The notes beneath the pieces were generated by a model. The model saw only the letters and a program-made list of their open reading frames with translations, searched no databases and had not been told where the DNA came from. The position numbers and the translations under genes are program-made. A stretch of DNA of 64,000 nucleotides from Oikopleura dioica (taxonomy: Eukaryota; Animalia; Chordata): contig OU015567.1 of NCBI GenBank assembly GCA_907165135.1, positions 2,294,001 to 2,358,000 of the forward strand, given 5' to 3'. Shown here one piece after another: positions 1 through 27,800 of this stretch. Each line of letters opens with the position of its first letter. Within the stretch, counting starts at the first letter, position 1.

Positions 1-2333
1 TGATTGTTCAATAAGCAAAAAAGGGGAACTCTTTTGGTCTTTACGGAAATTTAAGGGGGTGCACACCGGTTTTTCAAACGAGGTTATCGTCTTCTGAATA
101 AAGGGAGGGGAGCCCTTTTTTAATATTTTTATCTTTTATCATTTTTTAGAGTTGTCTTTCTAAATAATTTTGAGAAAAATGACGCTTATCATTTAAACTT
201 CCGTTTTCCCATCCTTCTCCCGGGCGGAAATCCAAAGGGATAATCCAGCATTAGATGCTCTTTAGTTTAAACTCTTTTATGATAATTATATCAAAATGAG
301 TTTGAGAGAAATTTTTTTTTTAGAAAATTGAAGATTTTGAGCTCTAAAATTGACGTCAATTATACCGGAAGTATCCTCTTATATTGAAAAAGCCCTTTTA
401 TAATTTTTTGTCTGGCAGACAATGATAAAAAAGGTTCAACGACACGAAGATAAAGTATCTGCTACAGTAGCGGTTGATAATTCAGGGAGATCAGTTCAGG
501 GCGTTCTTCTTTAGGAGTTATTACAGTGACGACCTTATCTAAGGGAGCCTCTACGCAAGTTGAACTTTCGAGCTGATATTTAGCATAAATTGAGCCCGAA
601 GATCTGTATGAAAATCCCCAAGCAATGCGCATCGGTTAATTCCGTCTGAAGTGTTTCTTCAAACGAAACTCGCCATGGCTCGATGATTTTGAAAATCCAG
701 AATTTGCGAAATTTTCGCCAAATTCCTAAGCTGCTTATCAACAAATCCCAAATCCCATAATTGGGATTGTTTTTTGGATAACAGGCACTTGAGGACCCCC
801 AAGTGGAAAAGCTCTTATTTTCGTTTGAAAAACAGGAATTAATGCTAATTGTAGAAATCTTGTTGGTCCGCGAAATGACGTTAATCAATTTCATCATCAT
901 TATTTTTTGAAGAGAATAGTAGCATTGCATTTCTTTTGCCACAAACGAGGGGATAGAAGAATCCGTGATTGCAGGCCGTTGATGCTGTTGAACTAGCCTC
1001 TCAAATTACGAAAAGTAACGAAACACCCTTAATCTAGCGACCAAATAACAGGTTTGTTTCGGTTGCAAATCATCCTCGAAAAACATCAGAAGAACTTCGA
1101 TGTAAGCAAATTTTTCTTTATCAAAAAAATTGCATTTTTTATCGTCAGAAATCCCCTTTTCGTGAAAATTTCATAAGACATCTAAGCAGTTTGACGTCAA
1201 TTCACAAAGTTCTAAAAGAAAAAATTTTTTTGATAAACATTTAATGAGCTTCCGACTTTTTTTATCTTCGACGGAAAGGGTTAAGAAACGGAAGTTTAGC
1301 GGTTTATGATTATCTTAATTCTTTTATTAATACACTTGTCTTTCCCCTAGCAACATTTTTGAATCGATTTCTGTAACGAAGGAAAAACTGGATTAGGGAG
1401 CTTATTTTTGCCCCGCTCATTGTCCGTAACATTTCATCCGGATCTGCGCTATTCGGACAACATCTGACATCCAGTTGCCCTTTCATGCTTCCTTGCTGAG
1501 GAAGAGAAACAAAGCTTGTTGTCATTATTTATTAAATATTCAGTTTTTATTGTGAAGTGAGCGGGAAACTGTTGTTTTCATACTATACTGAAGTAATGTC
1601 TGTCAATTCTGAAACACTGTTTTTATGACACCCAGACTTAATTACCAGATACCCTTAGCTAAATAATTGACGACAGGTTGTCGACTAGATAATAATACTG
1701 TCAGTCCAAATGGAGACGGAAAATATTCTTAAATTTTCCGATTTTTTGTCAGATTTTTGACATTTTTATCGATAAATTGGTGATTTTAGATTTTCAGCCA
1801 ATCCAAAGCCCGCATTCAACTTATTCTTCCAATCAGATTTATCAAAGTCTCCTTTGAAAATCATTAAGTAAAATTGGTTTCAGAAACTCATTTTTTTTGA
1901 TAAATTTTTGAAAAAGCCTCAAATTACCGACATCGTTTATTTCAAATCTTGGGTCTTGTTTGACCCTGGCTCCGTTAACCCGTGCTCCAAACTTGATCTT
2001 AATCTAACTCGTACACGACCTTATCATCCATCCTCGTTTGATGAAAACGCACACAAAGCCAACACTACCTATCAATAATTTAGAAATATCACTCGGATCA
2101 TCTTTTGCTTTGGCAACTCGGCCACCTGGAGGTTCTTCGTTTGATGGCAGTTTTGATTCGCGAATTTTCAAAACGAACTGATAGAGCTTGAAACCACGGG
2201 TTACAAACAATCCGATCCAGCTTTACGGTCGTTTTTCGGATGATCTAAAAAGGCTCAATTTATGGTCGCAGATTTAGTTCACCCGATTTTCTACCAAAGT
2301 TAACGAAGTGACACCCTTATTTTTTTCCTCATT

Positions 2334-2850
2334 TGATGATTTCAAAAAACTTTTTGTGGGGCCGGAAATCGTAAAAAATCTGTTAGTGCAGTTTTCTTCA
2401 GCTCGTCGAGACGAGTCGAATGATGGGTCTAACTCCTGATAACTGTCAGGATTTACCGGTTTACCGGCTGGTTACCGGAAAATACGTTGTCACCCGCCGT
2501 TTTTGTTCTAGAAATGGTAAACAGATGATCGACCCAGGAAATTGTTCCTTATAGTCGGTTCTACTCTAGGCTCAAAGATGAGGCTCGTATCAATACTCTG
2601 AAGAGAGTTATCACAAAAACAGTAAATTTTACATGCATTTTGTTGTTGCTGCACTTTCCTGATTTTTTGTCCCATTTCTGCCATAAATAGTATTTTAGTG
2701 ATAACTCTCTTCAGAGTATTGATACGAGCCTCATCTTTGAGCCTAGAGTAGAACCGACTATAAGGAACAATTTCCTGGGTCGATCATCTGTTTACCATTT
2801 CTAGAACAAAAACCATTTCCGGCCCCACAAAAAGTTTTTTGAAATCATCA
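2334..2850. repeat. Nested inverted repeats (MITE-like hairpin)
   Basis: Perfect 36-bp outer arms at 2334-2369 and 2815-2850; perfect 115-bp inner arms at 2500-2614 and 2698-2812 around an 83-bp loop; no coding capacity. Confidence 0.8.
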
Positions 2851-18800: not shown

Positions 18801-19853
18801 CATCAACCCTTTTTCTTTACTGCCCCAAAATTTTTACTATTTAAAAACTCACCAGCCTAGTCATCACGAACCGAGTCATCAACCCATTTTCCTTACTGCC
18901 CCAAAATATAGCCCGATTTCAATACTCTGGCAGAACCCACCACGAACCTAGTCACACGAACCTAGTCCTCACAAACTTAGTCGTCATTCCCCGAAAGTGG
19001 TCAACTTCATGTTAGAATCGACACTGTAAATAATTTTCCCAGGTCGGGGTCGGTTGGTTTATGTTCGCTTGGTCGGTTTGAGATTGTTTATCACGAAAAT
19101 TCAAAAAATTTGCTGCAAAAATAATTTTTAATCATGGGGTGTTTCTTTGAAAAAGCCATTTATTTGATCGGTCTCTGAGACAGTTTATCGAAATTCATAT
19201 TCTCAGAAATAATGCTTCCGAAGCTTCATTTCATCCAAATAAGCACATGAGAAAAAAATTGTCTTCATTTTATCCAGAGGCTTCATTTTATCCGAGGCAT
19301 CATTCTATCCAAAGCATCATTTTATCCAAAAGCTTCATCTTATACAAAGCTTCATTTAATCCAATGACTTCATTTTATCCAATTTCCGAATTTTTTGAAA
19401 ATTGGGCTTCATTTTATCCAAAAGCATCATTTGATCCAATTGCTTCATTATATCCAAAAAAATATTTGGATCAAATGAAGTATTTGGATACAATGAAGCT
19501 TTGGATAAAATGAAGCTTCTGGATATAATGAAGCCAAATCCACCCGGTTTTCCCCAGTTGCCGCCAGGTGTGACGTGAAAAATATTCACATAGTCGGCAA
19601 GAGGAACATCCATTGTATGATTACAAAATACGTCGATTGAAAATTTATAATGCGGAGATGCATTAATAGTCTTCAAATGCCGATTTGGAATCGGATATGA
19701 CGGAAACTTGTTGAGAAACATCGTACATGATTCTAGCTCTAGATAAGTACATGGGTCTGCAAAACTGCCTGCAAAACGTTCATTATTTTCTGAAACTCTT
19801 TCGCCGAGCACAAGTTGAAAAATAAGCCACAAAAATGATCGAAAAAAGGACAT
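15876..19853 (-). CDS. Secreted multidomain protein with a ConA/LamG-like domain and Thr-rich mucin tracts; disrupted by an insertion and a frameshift
   Basis: Signal MSFFRSFLWLIFQLVLG; NIFHVTPGGNWGKPGDR...LKVYVSNPF domain; poly-Thr at about 17670-17720 and 15880-15970; insertion at 18198-19540 and a frameshift near 17815-17850. The 3' exons are approximate. Confidence 0.6.
18109..18197. repeat. 89-bp perfect direct repeat, copy 1 (coding exon sequence)
   Basis: Identical to 19541-19629; abuts the left TIR of the element. Confidence 0.95.
18198..19540. mobile_element. Non-autonomous TIR element (1343 bp) with ~210-bp TIRs built from ~18-bp TTCATTTTATCCAAA-type modules
   Basis: Termini GATTCGGCTTCATTATATCC and GGATATAATGAAGCCAAATC (1 mismatch); inverted similarity extends about 210 bp; internal CACGAACCTAGTC repeats; no transposase. 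Confidence 0.8.
19541..19629. repeat. 89-bp perfect direct repeat, copy 2
   Basis: Identical to 18109-18197; abuts the right TIR. Confidence 0.95.
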
Positions 19854-21504
19854 TTTTCGAAATAAAAAATGCGAATTTCTTAATCGAGCCGCGTTTGATA
19901 ATTTGGAGAGCAAAAATGTCCAAGAATAATTCGATGAGAGAATCAAAAATTCTGATTTTAAGAGAGCAATTAATTTTATATTTCAAAAATCATCGCTCAA
20001 ATGTTTAAAATTACCGAAAAAGTGACCAATTATCAAAAAACTAAAACGGTGTCTCTTAAAAAATGAATGTTTTAAGCCAAAATACGCTAACGGACTTTAT
20101 AAGTTTAGAAAATATTGGCTTGGATAAGGCTTAAAATATTGTATAAGAGAGCCTGCACTCCCAATATACTTTCGTCCACGTCATTTTATCAAATACAAGT
20201 GTCAGAAAATACCTGATAAAGGCGACGCCACACCTCTATCTTGGTCATTCTTGACAGATAGAGGATACTGAAATATTTTAGATAAAAAATATCTGTCGAA
20301 AATGCCTAAAATTGACGGAATAGAGGTTTGGTTTTATCATTTTTAAATCATGTATTGAAAAAAATGTTCATAAGAAATGACTTTTTTCCGAAAATAAGAC
20401 GTAACGAACTCATATGAGTTTACGTTTATTGCTTTCAAGTAGCTTTTGAAAGCACTATTCAGCACTTGCTGCATTTTCCAAGAAAAACCCTTCGTTGCTT
20501 TGAGCCTCGAATTACGCCAAGAGGTCGGTTCTCGAGGTCCAAAGCGCTTGTTTTTGCATATCCTGGCATTTTGAACCCAGCATCACGTGTCTAGTAGGAT
20601 CCATAGTTTGACTCTCTAACGAGCCTGTTATTATACAACTAACGCGAGTGCCGTTCGTAAACTATCCGGTGTAACGATATCAACCATTTTCTAATCATAT
20701 TTTTAGTTCAACTTCATTATTATTCAATAAATGTTTAAGAGCCAGAGAAGGCTTTTAGATAAACTGGAGACGAATCACTCAACAACTTACCAAGTTGTTT
20801 TTATCGGAAGTTATGCTTCAACCGCAGTCCAAAAATAGATTCTGCCCCGGTCATCGGAAGCACTTTCGAAAACCGGAAAGGGTTACGAAACGGAGGAAGA
20901 TATCGTTGATTCCATTATAGTCGATATTTAAGGCGATAGCGCCCTTTATTCTTAACAGAAAATATAAGTAATTTATGCACGAAAGTATCTTCCAGCTCAA
21001 CGCGAACACGTGACGGTTAATTTTTGAGCTCTCAACTATAAGTATCCGAAATACCGCTTGCAATTTTTGTAAGTACACCAAAACAACCCTCCGGACGTAC
21101 CCGTTTAGTGCCCTGAAAAGGTTATGTCAGCGAAAATAAATTCAAATTGAAGAAAGAAGCCATCTTTTAATAGCTTTTGTAAAACGAATGGCAACGCCTT
21201 TAAAAGTTTAGTATCAAAATAACGCGACTCCAGATTCTCGTAAGAAGCACGTTTTCTAAATATAATAAGATTAACTAAAGCAACTCAAAGCTGATAATGT
21301 CCAAAACAAACAGTTGGTTAAACCACGGATTCTTATGGTTTTAGTAACGTTCCAGCATCATGTTAAAATTCAACGCTGGAAATAACTCAAATGTTGAGGA
21401 TTGAATTTGACCACAATAATTTGCCGCTGCTGACTATCTTTGAGAAGAGAAAGAAAGCAAAAATTATTTCAATTATAAAATTTTTATTTCAGTATTGTTT
21501 TTCC

Positions 21505-21764
21505 TCAATATTTGTTGGCTGCTTTTGCCAAGATAGCTTCAAGAGGAAAGAGTCGTTTGGAAGGTGCAGGTTTGGCAGCAGCAGCTTGAGCAACAAGAGC
21601 GCCGATGTAATCTCGGAAGTCCTCGTCAGCTTCTCTGTCTGCAAGACCACTCGATCTCATCTTTAAAAAAATTGAAAATGAAATTTAAAAAAAAATATTA
21701 CCTGCATGGTTCCAAAATGTGCGGAAACAGCGACGAAGCAGCTCAAAAATTTCAAAAATTGCAT
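21505..21764 (-). CDS. 72-aa secreted peptide precursor (prohormone-like), 2 exons
   Basis: Exons 21764-21702 and 21660-21505 joined by a 41-nt GT-AG intron give MQFLKFLSCFVAVSAHFGTMQMRSSGLADREADEDFRDYIGALVAQAAAAKPAPSKRLFPLEAILAKAANKY*; TATA box upstream and AATAAA just downstream. Confidence 0.75.
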
Positions 21765-21831
21765 ATTATAATTTTTTTCCTTTTCTTATTTATGCGAATC
21801 AAATGATGATTCCAGCCTGTGCTTTCCTCAC

Positions 21832-21838
21832 TTTTATA
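21832..21838 (-). promoter_or_regulatory. TATA box of the peptide precursor gene
   Basis: GCTATAAAAG on the minus strand about 70 nt upstream of ATG 21764. Confidence 0.6.
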
Positions 21839-22333
21839 GCTTTTCCACGCGCCTGGGGGCGTACAAGAGGAGGAGCCGCCGAGGAGGTACGTTTTTGCAA
21901 CCGCGGAGATGTATTATTCACCGATCATTGGTAGATTGAATTTGTAAGAGCTGTCTCTCGTCCATCAATCCCTATTTTATTTGTTAAAAATTTAAATATG
22001 GGCGGAGATATGGCAATATCATGTAATGAAATACTGTCGGCTGCTGTGAGACAGTAATTTCTCCCCTGTGGTCTTAAAAAACAGACCGCTACAGTGTTCT
22101 TACGGGAAGGAGACCGTCTTGAGGTGAGAGAATTGATAGAAAAGGTACATCTTAACCCGTTTTATTATTATTCTTATTCTTTCGACAATCAAATTCAGGG
22201 TTCAGCCGATTTATGGAACTGATGTTATGGATCAGGGTTTTGATTGGCCGGTAGGCTTAATACATCAATCTTATTGATTATCCAAAAATGCACTTCATAA
22301 ATTGGTAAAATGGTAACTTTCATAAAGGCTTAA

Positions 22334-22859
22334 CCTTAGCCCGCCAAAAGTGGATTTTCTGGGGTACCCGCCAAGAACACCATATATGGTGCATCCTCTA
22401 TTAAATCTCTGCACCATATTTGGTTTATCATGATTTTATTAAAAATCTTTGCTGGAAAATAATTTTTTAATCAATATTGGTGTTCCAATCATGATACCAA
22501 AGTTCATTTAATCGAAAATTCTCTCAGAGAAGTTCATAAATTGAGGATCAGAGAAGCTGACCAAGGTAAACTTTCGTCAAAATCGCTGGGAAAAAGCTGG
22601 GGTACCCGCCAAAAACACCATATATGGTGTAGCAACAATTGTAGCTCGACACCATATATGGTGCATGGGCTTTTCGCAAAAATAAGGGTCTACCAACGCT
22701 AAGGTCTATCAGAAACAGGCCCAAAATCCCTTAAACGATAGATAATCGATCAAGCATCCTCAGCGTATCCTTAGTTTTCGAAAAAAAAAATCAACGTCCA
22801 GCGCAGTGAACAAATACTTGACCGATTCCCGAGTTGTGGTGTACCTTGGCGGGCTAAGG
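22334..22859. mobile_element. piggyBac-like MITE (526 bp)
   Basis: TTAA|CCTTAGCCCGCCAA ... TTGGCGGGCTAAGG|TTAA: 14-bp TIR with TTAA TSD; internal repeated palindrome CACCATATATGGTG x3. Confidence 0.8.
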
Positions 22860-22863
22860 TTAA

Positions 22864-23692
22864 GGGTGTCAACAACGATCCAATAAGGGTCTGTCTAATG
22901 ATTCGACCAATTAATATCTTTTTATTCAGCCTTTTAGGATTCCAAATCTTTTTCAGATCTGAAATATCTCATCTGGGTCAGGAGATACGCACCATTCTAT
23001 AGGCGCGCTAATGCACTAGCGCTCAGTAGAAATGCACTATTAGAAATGCCATTTTTCAACTTTCGTTTTTATATATTAACCAGTATATTTTCTGAAAGCT
23101 TAAAAAATTTCCTTTTCAATGATACCCATATCGATAGGATCAGGCAAGTTTTTCAAGGTCAAACAGCGCTACAAAAGTCGCAAACAGCTGCACTTTAGCG
23201 CCGGAAAAGGGGATTAAGGGATTAATCAGTACTCAATCTTTGCGCACCGGGGGATTGTGAAGGGATCAAACAATGATCGCTGCGAAAATGAAAAAAATCG
23301 ATCTGCAGAAACTGCACTAGAATCGACTTCAAAATTTGGATAAATCTTACTTCAAGATAATGCATGAAAAAAGATGCATGCAGTGAAGTTTTCAGAAATC
23401 CCTCAAATTTACTTTGTACAAAAGTGTTTGAGCTTTCATATCGTGAAAAAATAATTGAAATTGAATTACGGGAAAGTACCTAAACTATTGTTACAAGTTT
23501 GGCGAAATCCTGCATTTGGAGTTTCTTTGAAGCCGCGGTGGGGATTATGGGATTAGTATTTCAAAATTTCGTCAAATTTTCTTTGTAAATTAGGGTTCAA
23601 TTGAAAAAATGAGAGGAAAAATGAATCAAAAGCGAATCGGGAAGTAACTCAAACTATTGTTACAAATATGGCCAGAATCGTTGTTGACACCC
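22864..23692. mobile_element. TTAA-targeting MITE with GG termini (Kolobok-like, 829 bp)
   Basis: TTAA|GGGTGTCAACAACGAT ... ATCGTTGTTGACACCC|TTAA: 16-bp perfect TIR; its left TTAA (22860-22863) is shared with the preceding element. Confidence 0.8.
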
Positions 23693-24880
23693 TTAAGTCC
23701 GAAATTCACAAGAAGTTGACTCAAGACTTGACCTAGTTTTCACAGAGGAGCCTTTTTGTTATCAGCTTGTTATCTCATCATTGGTTATGAATATTCAACC
23801 CCTATGGTATGAGCGAACGCTGATGTTTTTTCAGAATGAACTTCATCATCAGATAACTTCTATTTTTTTCTTGTCAATAATTCTGAATTCTACAGAAGAC
23901 GAGTGCAATGGATTTTTCCATTGTTTTTCGAAGCTGTAGTTTTCGTAGCGTTACTAATTCAGCTCAAACTCGAGGAAATGAAGTGGTTTGGCAAGTGTTC
24001 CGCGCTGACTTTCGCTGATCAGTAGGCATAAGTAGGGATGGGCTTGTCTTTGCTTATTCAGAATAAGACTGTAGAAGCTCAATTTGCGGCATTGGTGACA
24101 TAAGAGCGTATAAGAGGCATAGTCCACTCGTGGAGGCCGACGAGTTCGAAACGTCAGCAATAAAGAATAATCCATTAGTGCAAATAAGTCTCGATAAAGG
24201 AATTAGTTCGGCAGAAAATGACGCAAATTTTTGTTAATAAAAACAATATTAATGGACCTTACTATGCAATCTCCAAAAAACATGATCTTTGATGCCTAAG
24301 ATATCATTAACTTAATGATTCATTAAGTATAAAACCAGATAAATCAATCAGAAATGCATTACCATCTTCCTCCTTTTTTGAAAATTAATGATTGTAAGAA
24401 ATATAGAATATTAGAATAATGTCGATTCAAGGCGCCGAGTCGTCGAATCGAACATGAATAGACAATTTTAACGATATTTTTTAACCTGAAACTAGCTTGC
24501 TTTGTACCGAAAATTCTCAAAGATTAGGGCAATGTCAAATGCCATCGTATCCTTACAATCATATGTTCACACCCATAATCGGCTCAAACTCCTTCTGGTT
24601 GATCCTTTTTTATGGACATGATTTGCTTTTTACATGTGTTCGATAATAGGGATTGATCATAGCCGGCAAGTTGGGATTTGTTTATTGGAGAATCTTTGTT
24701 TTACAATATTATCCAGCAATCAACAAGGAGTTCACTCAGTCGTCAGGTAAATCTGTTAATTTGCCGCTTTCTCATTCGTTCAGGATCTTTTTGGGAAAAG
24801 ATCGGAGACAGAAAATCCATTTGTAGCGTTCTCCATGTTTCTTCGAGAAAAAATCAACATCAGCGTCTTTGAAACATCAT

Positions 24881-27800
24881 TTAACCCACTCTTGACGGAA
24901 GCTCGCTTACCTGGAGACAGTAAAAAGCTATGCCAGTCAAAAATAGCTTCATGCATCCAAAGAGCAATCCTGCAATCATCGAGCCAATCGAGAATATCGT
25001 CAAAACAGCAAAAAATCGTATTGTGTATAGTAATCACGCATAAACAGATGTGGTAAGAGGAATATTCCCGAGCACGCGCGATAACTTATACTATGGATGA
25101 CTCTTAGCAGCCTTAGAGTCAAGGTTATGGTTTGGGTAGTATGTAAGCAAGTGCTCATCACCTACACACTACCTAGGGGAAATATAAATGAGCTTATTCT
25201 AGGGATGGAGGGCGGGTGAGAATTTTGAGAGTTGCATAATTCTCGGCTTCGCGAGTTTGGATACTCTCAAAATTCTCTTAACTTTTCCCCTAAGAATATT
25301 ATAGCCCTTGGCTATAATTTTCGGAACTGGTTTGCGTGAGTACCGGACAGCCGCTTAAATGACTCGCTCTCTTACGCCCGTATCACCTCCCACTTCTTTT
25401 CTGGGTCATGGCGCTGTCGTTTCCCTGGCTGCTTATCCGAGTCTACTAGCGCTTGCACTGATTATCCGAATCCTATATTCGTATAGTAATCACGCATAAA
25501 CAGATGTGGTAAGAGGAATATTCCCTCCCCTACCATTTTTGTTATTCTCATCATTTGGAGAAATTTTCTAGCCTTTTTATAAAAAGGAATTTACCAGTTT
25601 AACTTTTAAGAAAAAGGTGAGAATGTTTTGTTTATCAAGATGCTAGATTTATTATTTTTTTTTTAATAAATCTGCATCTAAGGAATCGTTTCTAGTGCAG
25701 AGCATAGTCCTTTTTTCCTTAGTTGAAAATTCTTTGGCTTCGCCATCTTGCCAGCTCTGGCTTCCGGAAAACGGAAATCAAAATTTTTAGGCGATTTTCT
25801 AAAGTTTGCACTGCGTGCGCTTTTTGAACCTGCCTAGATGATGGGCGCTAGTTAGCAAAGAGTTCTCGTCTTCAATGTCACAGATCTTATAATTTGATCG
25901 AAGCATGATACTCGGTGAGAAATGCGTCAAGCCGAGTGCAGGGAGATGCAACACGCCCACCGCCAGGAGTTAACTCCTGCTAAGACAGCTGCAGGGCCAA
26001 ACTCGAGTGAACTGGTGGCAAATCATGGAGCTTTCGGCGTGTGATGACTGAGCCAAAATGGAACTAAATGCCATATGGAGAGGCTTTGTACCTCCGAATT
26101 TCGAGAAAAATATTTTCAATCGGTTGTAAAAACCTTGAACTCGGATTTTTAGTTAAAGTCTGCGCAAATTTAACGCGCGACTCTTTTTTTTTGTACTTCA
26201 CGACTTCTAGCGAGAGTCGCTTTGTATTGCGAGTCTTATTTTTCTCGTTCCTCGTTGAGAACTTCTTTCTACGAGTATCTTAACCGGCCGGAATCAGGCA
26301 AGTGGGTCAAGATTTATTTTACACAGTCTGAAAGAATGAACTTGGTGAAGCGGTTCTGAAGGTGTTTTAGAATGAGATTTTTAAATTCTCTTTTGCACCT
26401 TGTTCAGGAAGACCTGAAGTTTTTACTTTTTGCCTTCGAATATTTGAAACGAGGCCTTTTAATTATTGTCCCAAAGACTTTCTTTTTAGTCTGCAAAAGA
26501 CTTCGCTTTCCAGTCAAGAGACTGTATAGTTTAAAGTCAAGAAGACTTAGGTTTAGAGTCAAGAGACTGTTCAGTTTATAGTCTTGAAGAGACTAGGGGT
26601 AGAATAAGCGGTAAATCCAAATGATGGTCTACCTAAGAGTGTTTTGAGAGTTGCATAATTCTCGGCTTCGCGAGTTTGGATACTCTCAAAATTCTCTTAA
26701 CTTTTCCCCTAAGAATATTATAGCCCTTGGCTATAATTTTCGGAACTGGTTTGCGTGAGTACCGGACAGCCGCTTAAATGACTCGCTCTCTTACGCCCGT
26801 ATCACCTCCCACTTCTTTTCTGGGTCATGGCGCTGTCGTTTCCCTGGCTGCTTATCCGAGTCTACTAGCGCTTGCACTGATTATCCGAATCCTATATTCT
26901 TTTAGTAGAATGGCATATTGTGCGGTTTCGTGAACAAATGGCATCACGTAGTCTATTTAATAGAGTTCAAGAAAGAAACTTTGAAAAGTTCACCTTCAGG
27001 TAAATCGAGGCCAAGGAACTTTTCCAACGGCTTGACTCCTTCCTTCACATTAAAAACCAACAACCGTTCTTTTGGAATAACAGTCTGAACGTATCTGACC
27101 CAGTTGATGTAGAACTGTTCCCAGTCAGAAGACGGCCATGCCCAGAAATTGTCGAGATCGGAAGTCAGCTGCTGATTTTCAGGGGCGGTGGAATTTCCCT
27201 TTTCGATGCCTTTGCCAAGCCAAGATCTTGCCATTTTTCGCTGATAAGAGACGGCGAAGACAGAGGCAGGATGAGCGGTAAGGTAGAAGATATTCGTCTA
27301 GAAGCCCTAAAATGGGGTAGACAAGCCTTTACGCCGACAAAATGATCAAACACTTTGTTTTTGATCTTACCTCTCTATAATGCTGCATAACTGTATTTTC
27401 AAAAGACTCAACCCATTTTTTCGGACTGTCGCGGATTCCGAGAATCACGCTTGCATCTGGAAATGCATCGGCCAGCTCTTTCACCATGAAGCAAGTCGGG
27501 ATATCCGTGCTAGAAATATACCCTCGATCTTTTACGAATGAAATTATCGAGTCAACATCGTTGCGATCAAGGCAATCGACCCAGAAACCCTGGTCATTTG
27601 AGGTGTAGCATTGCGAGCCATGATAGCTAAAAGATTTTTAAAAAATTTGAAGAATATCTCTTACCTGGGAGCAGGGATGTACATTCGCAGAAATTTTTGC
27701 TTTGCGCTGCGCTGCGATTGCGGATTTTTTTGTGGGCGATTTTGCGCTGTTTTGCGCTGCGGAATCCGAAAATCGCGCAAATTGCAAAATTTTGCGCTGT

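Follow-up and report, generated by a model that had tools for sequence, protein, structure and literature searches.

A single-copy Oikopleura dioica gene for an orphan, putatively prohormone-like precursor with a strongly conserved C-terminal end

On the minus strand of a sequence from Oikopleura dioica, a planktonic tunicate and chordate model with a simple nervous system and a tiny genome that is the most compact among chordates, two short exons raise the question of whether they form a genuine gene for a small precursor protein and, if so, which part of its product is functional. The exons lie in a window of 64,000 nt, the whole stretch of DNA that was analyzed (contig OU015567.1 of assembly GCA_907165135.1, positions 2,294,001 to 2,358,000). 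A first-pass annotation of this window had proposed a TATA box, a signal peptide, an acidic region, an Ala-rich spacer, a dibasic KR site, a C-terminal 15-mer and an AATAAA signal, and all of these elements are present on the minus strand. They belong to a two-exon, single-copy protein-coding gene, which is real and has the following features (window coordinates):

21838-21831, minus strand: TATA box TATAAAAG, read from the sequence, 74 nt 5' of the ATG; putative promoter element
21764, minus strand: start codon ATG, preceded by an in-frame TAA (8 codons upstream) and by A at -3
21764-21702, minus strand: coding part of exon 1, 63 nt, 21 aa
21764-21720, minus strand: predicted signal peptide, residues 1-15, with cleavage after V-S-A
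21701-21661, minus strand: intron, 41 nt, GT..AG, phase 0
21660-21508, minus strand: coding part of exon 2, 153 nt, 51 aa, with acidic and Ala-rich stretches, KR and the 15-mer
21660-21574, minus strand: pro-region in exon 2, 29 aa, acidic, predicted helix, moderately conserved
21573-21508, minus strand: invariant 22-aa C-terminal block (KPAPS, KR and the 15-mer), from comparison with the metagenome contig L003
21558-21553, minus strand: KR dibasic site (Lys56-Arg57), read from the sequence
21552-21508, minus strand: 15-mer LFPLEAILAKAANKY, C-terminal end of the precursor
21507-21505, minus strand: stop codon TGA, read from the sequence
21488-21483, minus strand: AATAAA polyadenylation signal, 17 nt past the stop

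Joining the two exons yields a 72-aa product that is letter-for-letter identical to GenBank CAG5110047.1 (P0001; OKI2018_I69 chr2.g4496), and the splice junction of the GenBank model is the 21701-21661 junction. The exon-2 protein likewise gave a 100% match to the NCBI protein Oidioi.mRNA.OKI2018_I69.chr2.g4496.t1. GenBank already carries the gene as an unnamed model, and its description as hidden applies to the ORF track only, from which the spliced gene is indeed absent. Exon 2 by itself is a 51-aa ATG ORF and shows in an ORF list with a 20-aa cut-off. For the OKI2018_I69 annotation, AUGUSTUS was supplied with intron and exon hints from RNA-seq, and the introns of O. dioica have a median length of 49 nt (PMC8008620). 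Expression and splicing of the gene are backed indirectly, through this annotated model and through the conservation of the intron described below. Searches of the own genome at the protein level (E <= 10) and at the DNA level each gave this locus alone, setting the copy number at one, with no paralogues.

The first-pass annotation had also placed the gene alone in several kb of non-coding DNA. The 1.8 kb downstream of the gene are unique sequence, but the upstream side consists largely of two adjacent interspersed repeats, located at 22324-22866 (~540 bp) and 22860-23697 (~840 bp), about 0.5 kb upstream of the TATA box. Dozens of copies of each repeat, 74-95% identical, are spread over all chromosomes. 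The 22324-22866 repeat encloses short ORFs in which the strings HHIWC and PYMV recur, and this recurrence suggests that the element contains internal repeats. The neighbouring ORFs presented no Pfam domain, and an RNA-family (Rfam) scan of positions 19600-25100 found nothing.

The product had been described as belonging to no recognized family, and none of the resources that we searched contradicts this description. Pfam gave 0 matches for either exon at E <= 10, and the best match of a PDB sequence search, with E = 1.3, was not usable. All scores in the ESM Atlas were <= 0.80, a level that is attained in one third of cases by shuffled proteins; yeast alpha-factor precursors appeared among them with a score of 0.75 and were discounted as sub-noise. 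When 1.84 billion representative proteins were scanned exhaustively with a HMMER profile, only the O. dioica protein itself and a metagenomic orthologue (P0002, see below) were recovered. The profile spans 46 positions and is blind to distant kin, so the term orphan is used here for a protein with nothing detectable by sequence. With this meaning, the best reading of the gene is that of an orphan prohormone-like precursor, whose relatives beyond larvacean orthologues are undetected by sequence.

These larvacean orthologues come from metagenomes. A word-index protein search identified two ORFs of JGI metagenomes, P0002 (46 aa, 78% identical) and P0003 (45 aa, 65% identical), for three orthologous sequences in total, and the marine-metagenome contig L003 (Ga0115008_10010531) carries a complete orthologous gene with its parts in the same order. 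The L003 gene presents a counterpart of the TATA box (TATATAAA) 57 nt before its ATG, which has an A at -3 as in the window. Its exon 1 encodes 20 aa, with 17 of the 20 aligned residues identical, the hydrophobic core and V-S-A included. The intron that follows (42 nt, GT..AG) has the same position and phase as in the window, bearing out the proposal of a 72-aa precursor split by an intron. The L003 gene ends in TAA where the window has TGA, and an AATAAA follows about 9 nt after the stop. Leaving the intron unspliced shifts the frame in the window and meets a TAA in L003, and exon 2 opens with an ATG in the window but has a GCG at that place in L003; only the spliced model is therefore conserved. 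A BLASTN comparison of L003 against the whole window returned a sole alignment (window 21767-21507, L003 4884-5145), which corresponds to the CDS.

L003 derives from another larvacean lineage than the window. The sulfotransferase and the SAM-domain exon that neighbour the orthologous gene match the own genome at 54% and 82%, respectively, both on other chromosomes, and the nearest named protein to the L003 sulfotransferase is an O. dioica sulfotransferase (66%). The neighbouring ORFs of L003 comprise this sulfotransferase (1993-2559, minus strand), the SAM-domain exon (1408-1668, minus strand) and an amidinotransferase-like ORF (478-696, minus strand), whose own-genome counterpart is likewise on another chromosome. 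We found no synteny between the window and L003 and, given that the counterparts of the L003 neighbours lie elsewhere in the own genome, the microsynteny around the gene has not been kept between the two lineages.

The divergence between the window and L003 made it possible to compare their codons by a Nei-Gojobori count, in which the whole-CDS statistic pools the codon pairs of both exons. One percent-identity figure was taken from the two exons placed end to end; otherwise the full-length analyses relied on P0001, and L003 was treated one exon at a time. Synonymous sites are saturated in exon 2, with an overall pS of about 0.72. The last 22 codons present 12 synonymous differences and 0 amino-acid changes (pS 0.74, dN/dS ~0.006), the one "non-synonymous" unit counted in them being a path-averaging artefact at a Leu TTG/CTT pair. 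In the pro-region, 13 of 29 residues differ (dN/dS 0.17) and 9 positions are invariant across the aligned orthologues. The difference in residue change between the C-terminal block (0/22) and the pro-region (13/29) is significant (Fisher P 0.0002), and the chance of observing zero replacements in the block at the pro-region rate is ~4e-8. In the third lineage, represented by P0003, the C-terminal block is the same except that its penultimate residue is R instead of K, and none of the three lineages departs from KR. That the KR site and the C-terminal peptide should be conserved had been named beforehand as one of two tests of the proposed precursor, and these comparisons uphold it. The codon counts indicate that the last 22 residues are under very strong purifying selection; the saturation of synonymous sites within the block places this constraint at the level of the protein rather than at that of DNA or RNA.

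Exon 1 shows a synonymous deficit relative to exon 2, with 3 of 11 sites differing where 0.72 per site is expected (binomial P 0.002). A constraint on the nucleotides close to the start codon may account for this deficit, as may chance, the stretch being rich in T. On the opposite strand, a 103-aa ORF (L003:4829-5140, minus strand) runs antisense across the whole orthologous gene; it is a by-product of sense composition and not a gene. Antisense coding was rejected, as the frame spans only 25 aa in the window versus 103 aa in L003 and replacements accumulate in it.

Taken together, these data make it very probable that the locus is a genuine gene and that its small product is secreted and constrained at the C-terminus. 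The reading that we favour for this product, with a probability of roughly 0.45, is that of a prohormone-like prepropeptide that would be cut at KR to yield a 15-mer acting outside the cell. The TATA promoter would drive a transcript of ~0.3 kb with one 41-nt intron, and the N-terminal 15 residues would serve as a cleavable signal peptide through which the product enters the secretory pathway. A proprotein convertase would then cut after the invariant Lys56-Arg57, in a loop between two predicted helices, freeing the invariant C-terminal 15-mer (average mass 1662.0 Da), and the acidic helical pro-region would be a spacer or sorting piece. Outside the cell, the 15-mer may act as a signal in the manner of a neuropeptide or hormone, through a conserved partner for which a receptor is the simplest candidate. 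Precursors of bioactive peptides typically combine a frozen end-peptide with a spacer that drifts, and the persistence of a short peptide whose surroundings, including synteny, have diverged suggests that its molecular partner is specific and important.

The step on which this reading turns is cleavage after KR, to which we give about even odds. The main rival is a secreted mini-protein that stays uncut at KR. Following loss of the signal peptide, it would comprise ~57 residues (~6 kDa), arranged as an acidic helix, a KPAPSKR loop and a C-terminal helix, and it would act, for example, as a small ligand or as an extracellular or house-associated factor. AF2, run on the three-sequence alignment, predicted helices at residues 2-21, 28-49 and 60-71, albeit with low confidence (pLDDT 63, pTM 0.31), and the model was used for secondary structure alone; its three short helices would give meaningless fold matches. 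Its two helices joined by a loop agree with an uncut mini-protein. The confidence values of this model and of the ESM Atlas model (pTM 0.23) argue against one, as they provide no confident packing of the helices. KR itself sits in the predicted loop (residues 50-59), where it would be protease-accessible, and a strictly conserved KR that a secretory protein exposes in a loop would by default be a convertase substrate.

Conservation also bears on both readings. The invariant block begins 7 residues ahead of the proposed cut, and the five residues preceding KR are as invariant as the 15-mer, a pattern that fits an uncut functional unit equally well. The purifying selection seen in the pro-region, with its dN/dS of 0.17 and its 9 invariant positions, likewise favours the uncut protein. 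In contrast, the sharp drop in divergence at K51, from 45% to 0%, is more suggestive of two modules than of a single fold. The precursor has neither tandem peptide copies nor an amidation signal (no amidation Gly), and P4 is a Pro, hence there is no furin R-X-K/R-R site. The residue after KR (P1') is a Leu, which is ambiguous evidence because in chordate precursors, such as those of frog skin peptides, cuts do occur ahead of hydrophobic residues. In insects, a Leu at P1' disfavours Lys-Arg cleavage, and to this extent it speaks for the mini-protein (PMC6585902). Weighing these points, we regard the uncut mini-protein as rather unlikely and retain the KR-cut precursor as the preferred reading.

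The own genome contains at least 6 proprotein-convertase loci with P domains (among L004-L011), and all of the convertase catalytic motifs that could be read are ASGNGG, with an Asn at the oxyanion position. PC2 carries an Asp in place of the oxyanion-hole Asn, and no such PC2-type Asp was found among the readable convertase loci of the own genome. The Pfam model of 7B2 gave no match in a search that lacked a working positive control, the control genomes being equally silent. The convertase loci count in favour of a cut at KR; the lack of a PC2-type Asp and of a 7B2 match counts against it. O. dioica may be without the classical PC2/7B2 pair, or may have a pair too diverged to detect.

Secretion itself depends on the N-terminus, which contains one Lys followed by a hydrophobic core of ~10 residues (FLSCFVAVSA) with V-S-A at -3..-1, a layout kept in L003. 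The best 19-residue Kyte-Doolittle window reaches 1.15, too weak for a transmembrane helix, and for this reason the best reading of the N-terminus is a cleavable signal peptide. The cleavage after V-S-A suggested by the first-pass annotation agrees with these signal-peptide-like features and with the presence of both the core and V-S-A in L003. The competing explanation is a non-secreted micropeptide, in which the hydrophobic N-terminus would act as a membrane anchor or organelle-targeting segment and the basic, conserved C-terminus would bind an intracellular partner. The shortness of the hydrophobic core and a stretch of 28 initial residues without any acidic residue are in keeping with this explanation. 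We consider it improbable, since the low hydropathy is unsuited to an anchor, the two basic residues in the first 26 make a poor mitochondrial presequence, and the succession of n-region, h-region and V-x-A motif is maintained in the L003 orthologue.

A frog-skin-type antimicrobial precursor, with a signal peptide, an acidic propiece, KR and a membrane-attacking C-terminal helix, would share the architecture of the O. dioica protein, and the amphipathic defence peptide suggested beforehand is of this kind. The 15-mer is predicted to be helical (AF2), and we take it to bear a loose resemblance to the N-termini of brevinins and temporins (x-x-Pro-x-x-Ala-x-x-Ala). The properties of the 15-mer do not sustain the suggestion. 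Its net charge is +1, below the value of about +2 or more that would be expected, and its helical hydrophobic moment of 0.31 is matched by 21% of shuffles (P 0.21). Furthermore, its sequence is frozen over saturated synonymous divergence, whereas defence peptides usually diversify, and the gene is single-copy, outside any gene family. An antimicrobial role is thus very unlikely. Finally, the reading as two ORFs that arose by chance in intergenic, AT-rich sequence and were caught by a gene predictor, for which the tiny size of the gene and its lack of a Pfam domain might speak, is effectively refuted by an orthologue of identical architecture, by an alignment with L003 that is confined to the CDS, and by a substitution pattern of 12 synonymous versus 0 replacement changes in 22 codons (zero replacements having a chance of ~4e-8 even at the pro-region rate).

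In our searches of the literature, we came across no account of neuropeptides or peptide hormones in larvaceans. An O. dioica single-cell atlas preprint, which maps to the Bergen assembly, makes no mention of peptides or of such a gene (bioRxiv 10.64898/2026.03.31.715263). By itself, the locus adds one unnamed, already-annotated gene with a candidate function only. It is a good, if unproven, candidate for a lineage-specific signalling peptide. A more tentative proposal, to which we attach somewhat less than an even chance, is that the gene founds a family of peptide hormones or neuropeptides restricted to larvaceans, in which a dedicated receptor would hold the 15-mer or the whole 22-residue block invariant. 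If this is true, the most compact genome among chordates would harbour a ligand-receptor system specific to its lineage. The precursor would help toward a first larvacean peptidome, and toward establishing how much of chordate peptide signalling has been replaced by lineage-specific inventions.

Two groups of known precursors invite comparison with the O. dioica protein. Amphibian skin precursors, such as preprodermaseptin and those of brevinins and temporins, consist of a signal peptide, an acidic propiece whose last residues are KR, and a short C-terminal helical peptide, and the O. dioica precursor has the same order of parts. It differs from them in that its 15-mer is neither cationic nor significantly amphipathic, in that this peptide is frozen where theirs are hypervariable, and in that the gene is single-copy, with no homology detected. 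The second group is that of metazoan neuropeptide and prohormone precursors, exemplified among tunicates by the Ciona peptides Ci-LF, Ci-YFV/L and Ci-GALP, known from peptidomics (PMC6475428). The O. dioica precursor shows no sequence similarity to Ciona-type precursors in the Pfam, PDB and HMMER searches, and it departs from neuropeptide precursors in having one peptide copy, no amidation Gly, a Leu at P1' and invariant residues ahead of KR. What it has in common with them is its overall design, that of a small preproprotein in which a predicted signal peptide at the N-terminus is followed by an acidic spacer and a conserved Lys-Arg, and in which the peptide at the end has changed far less than the spacer.
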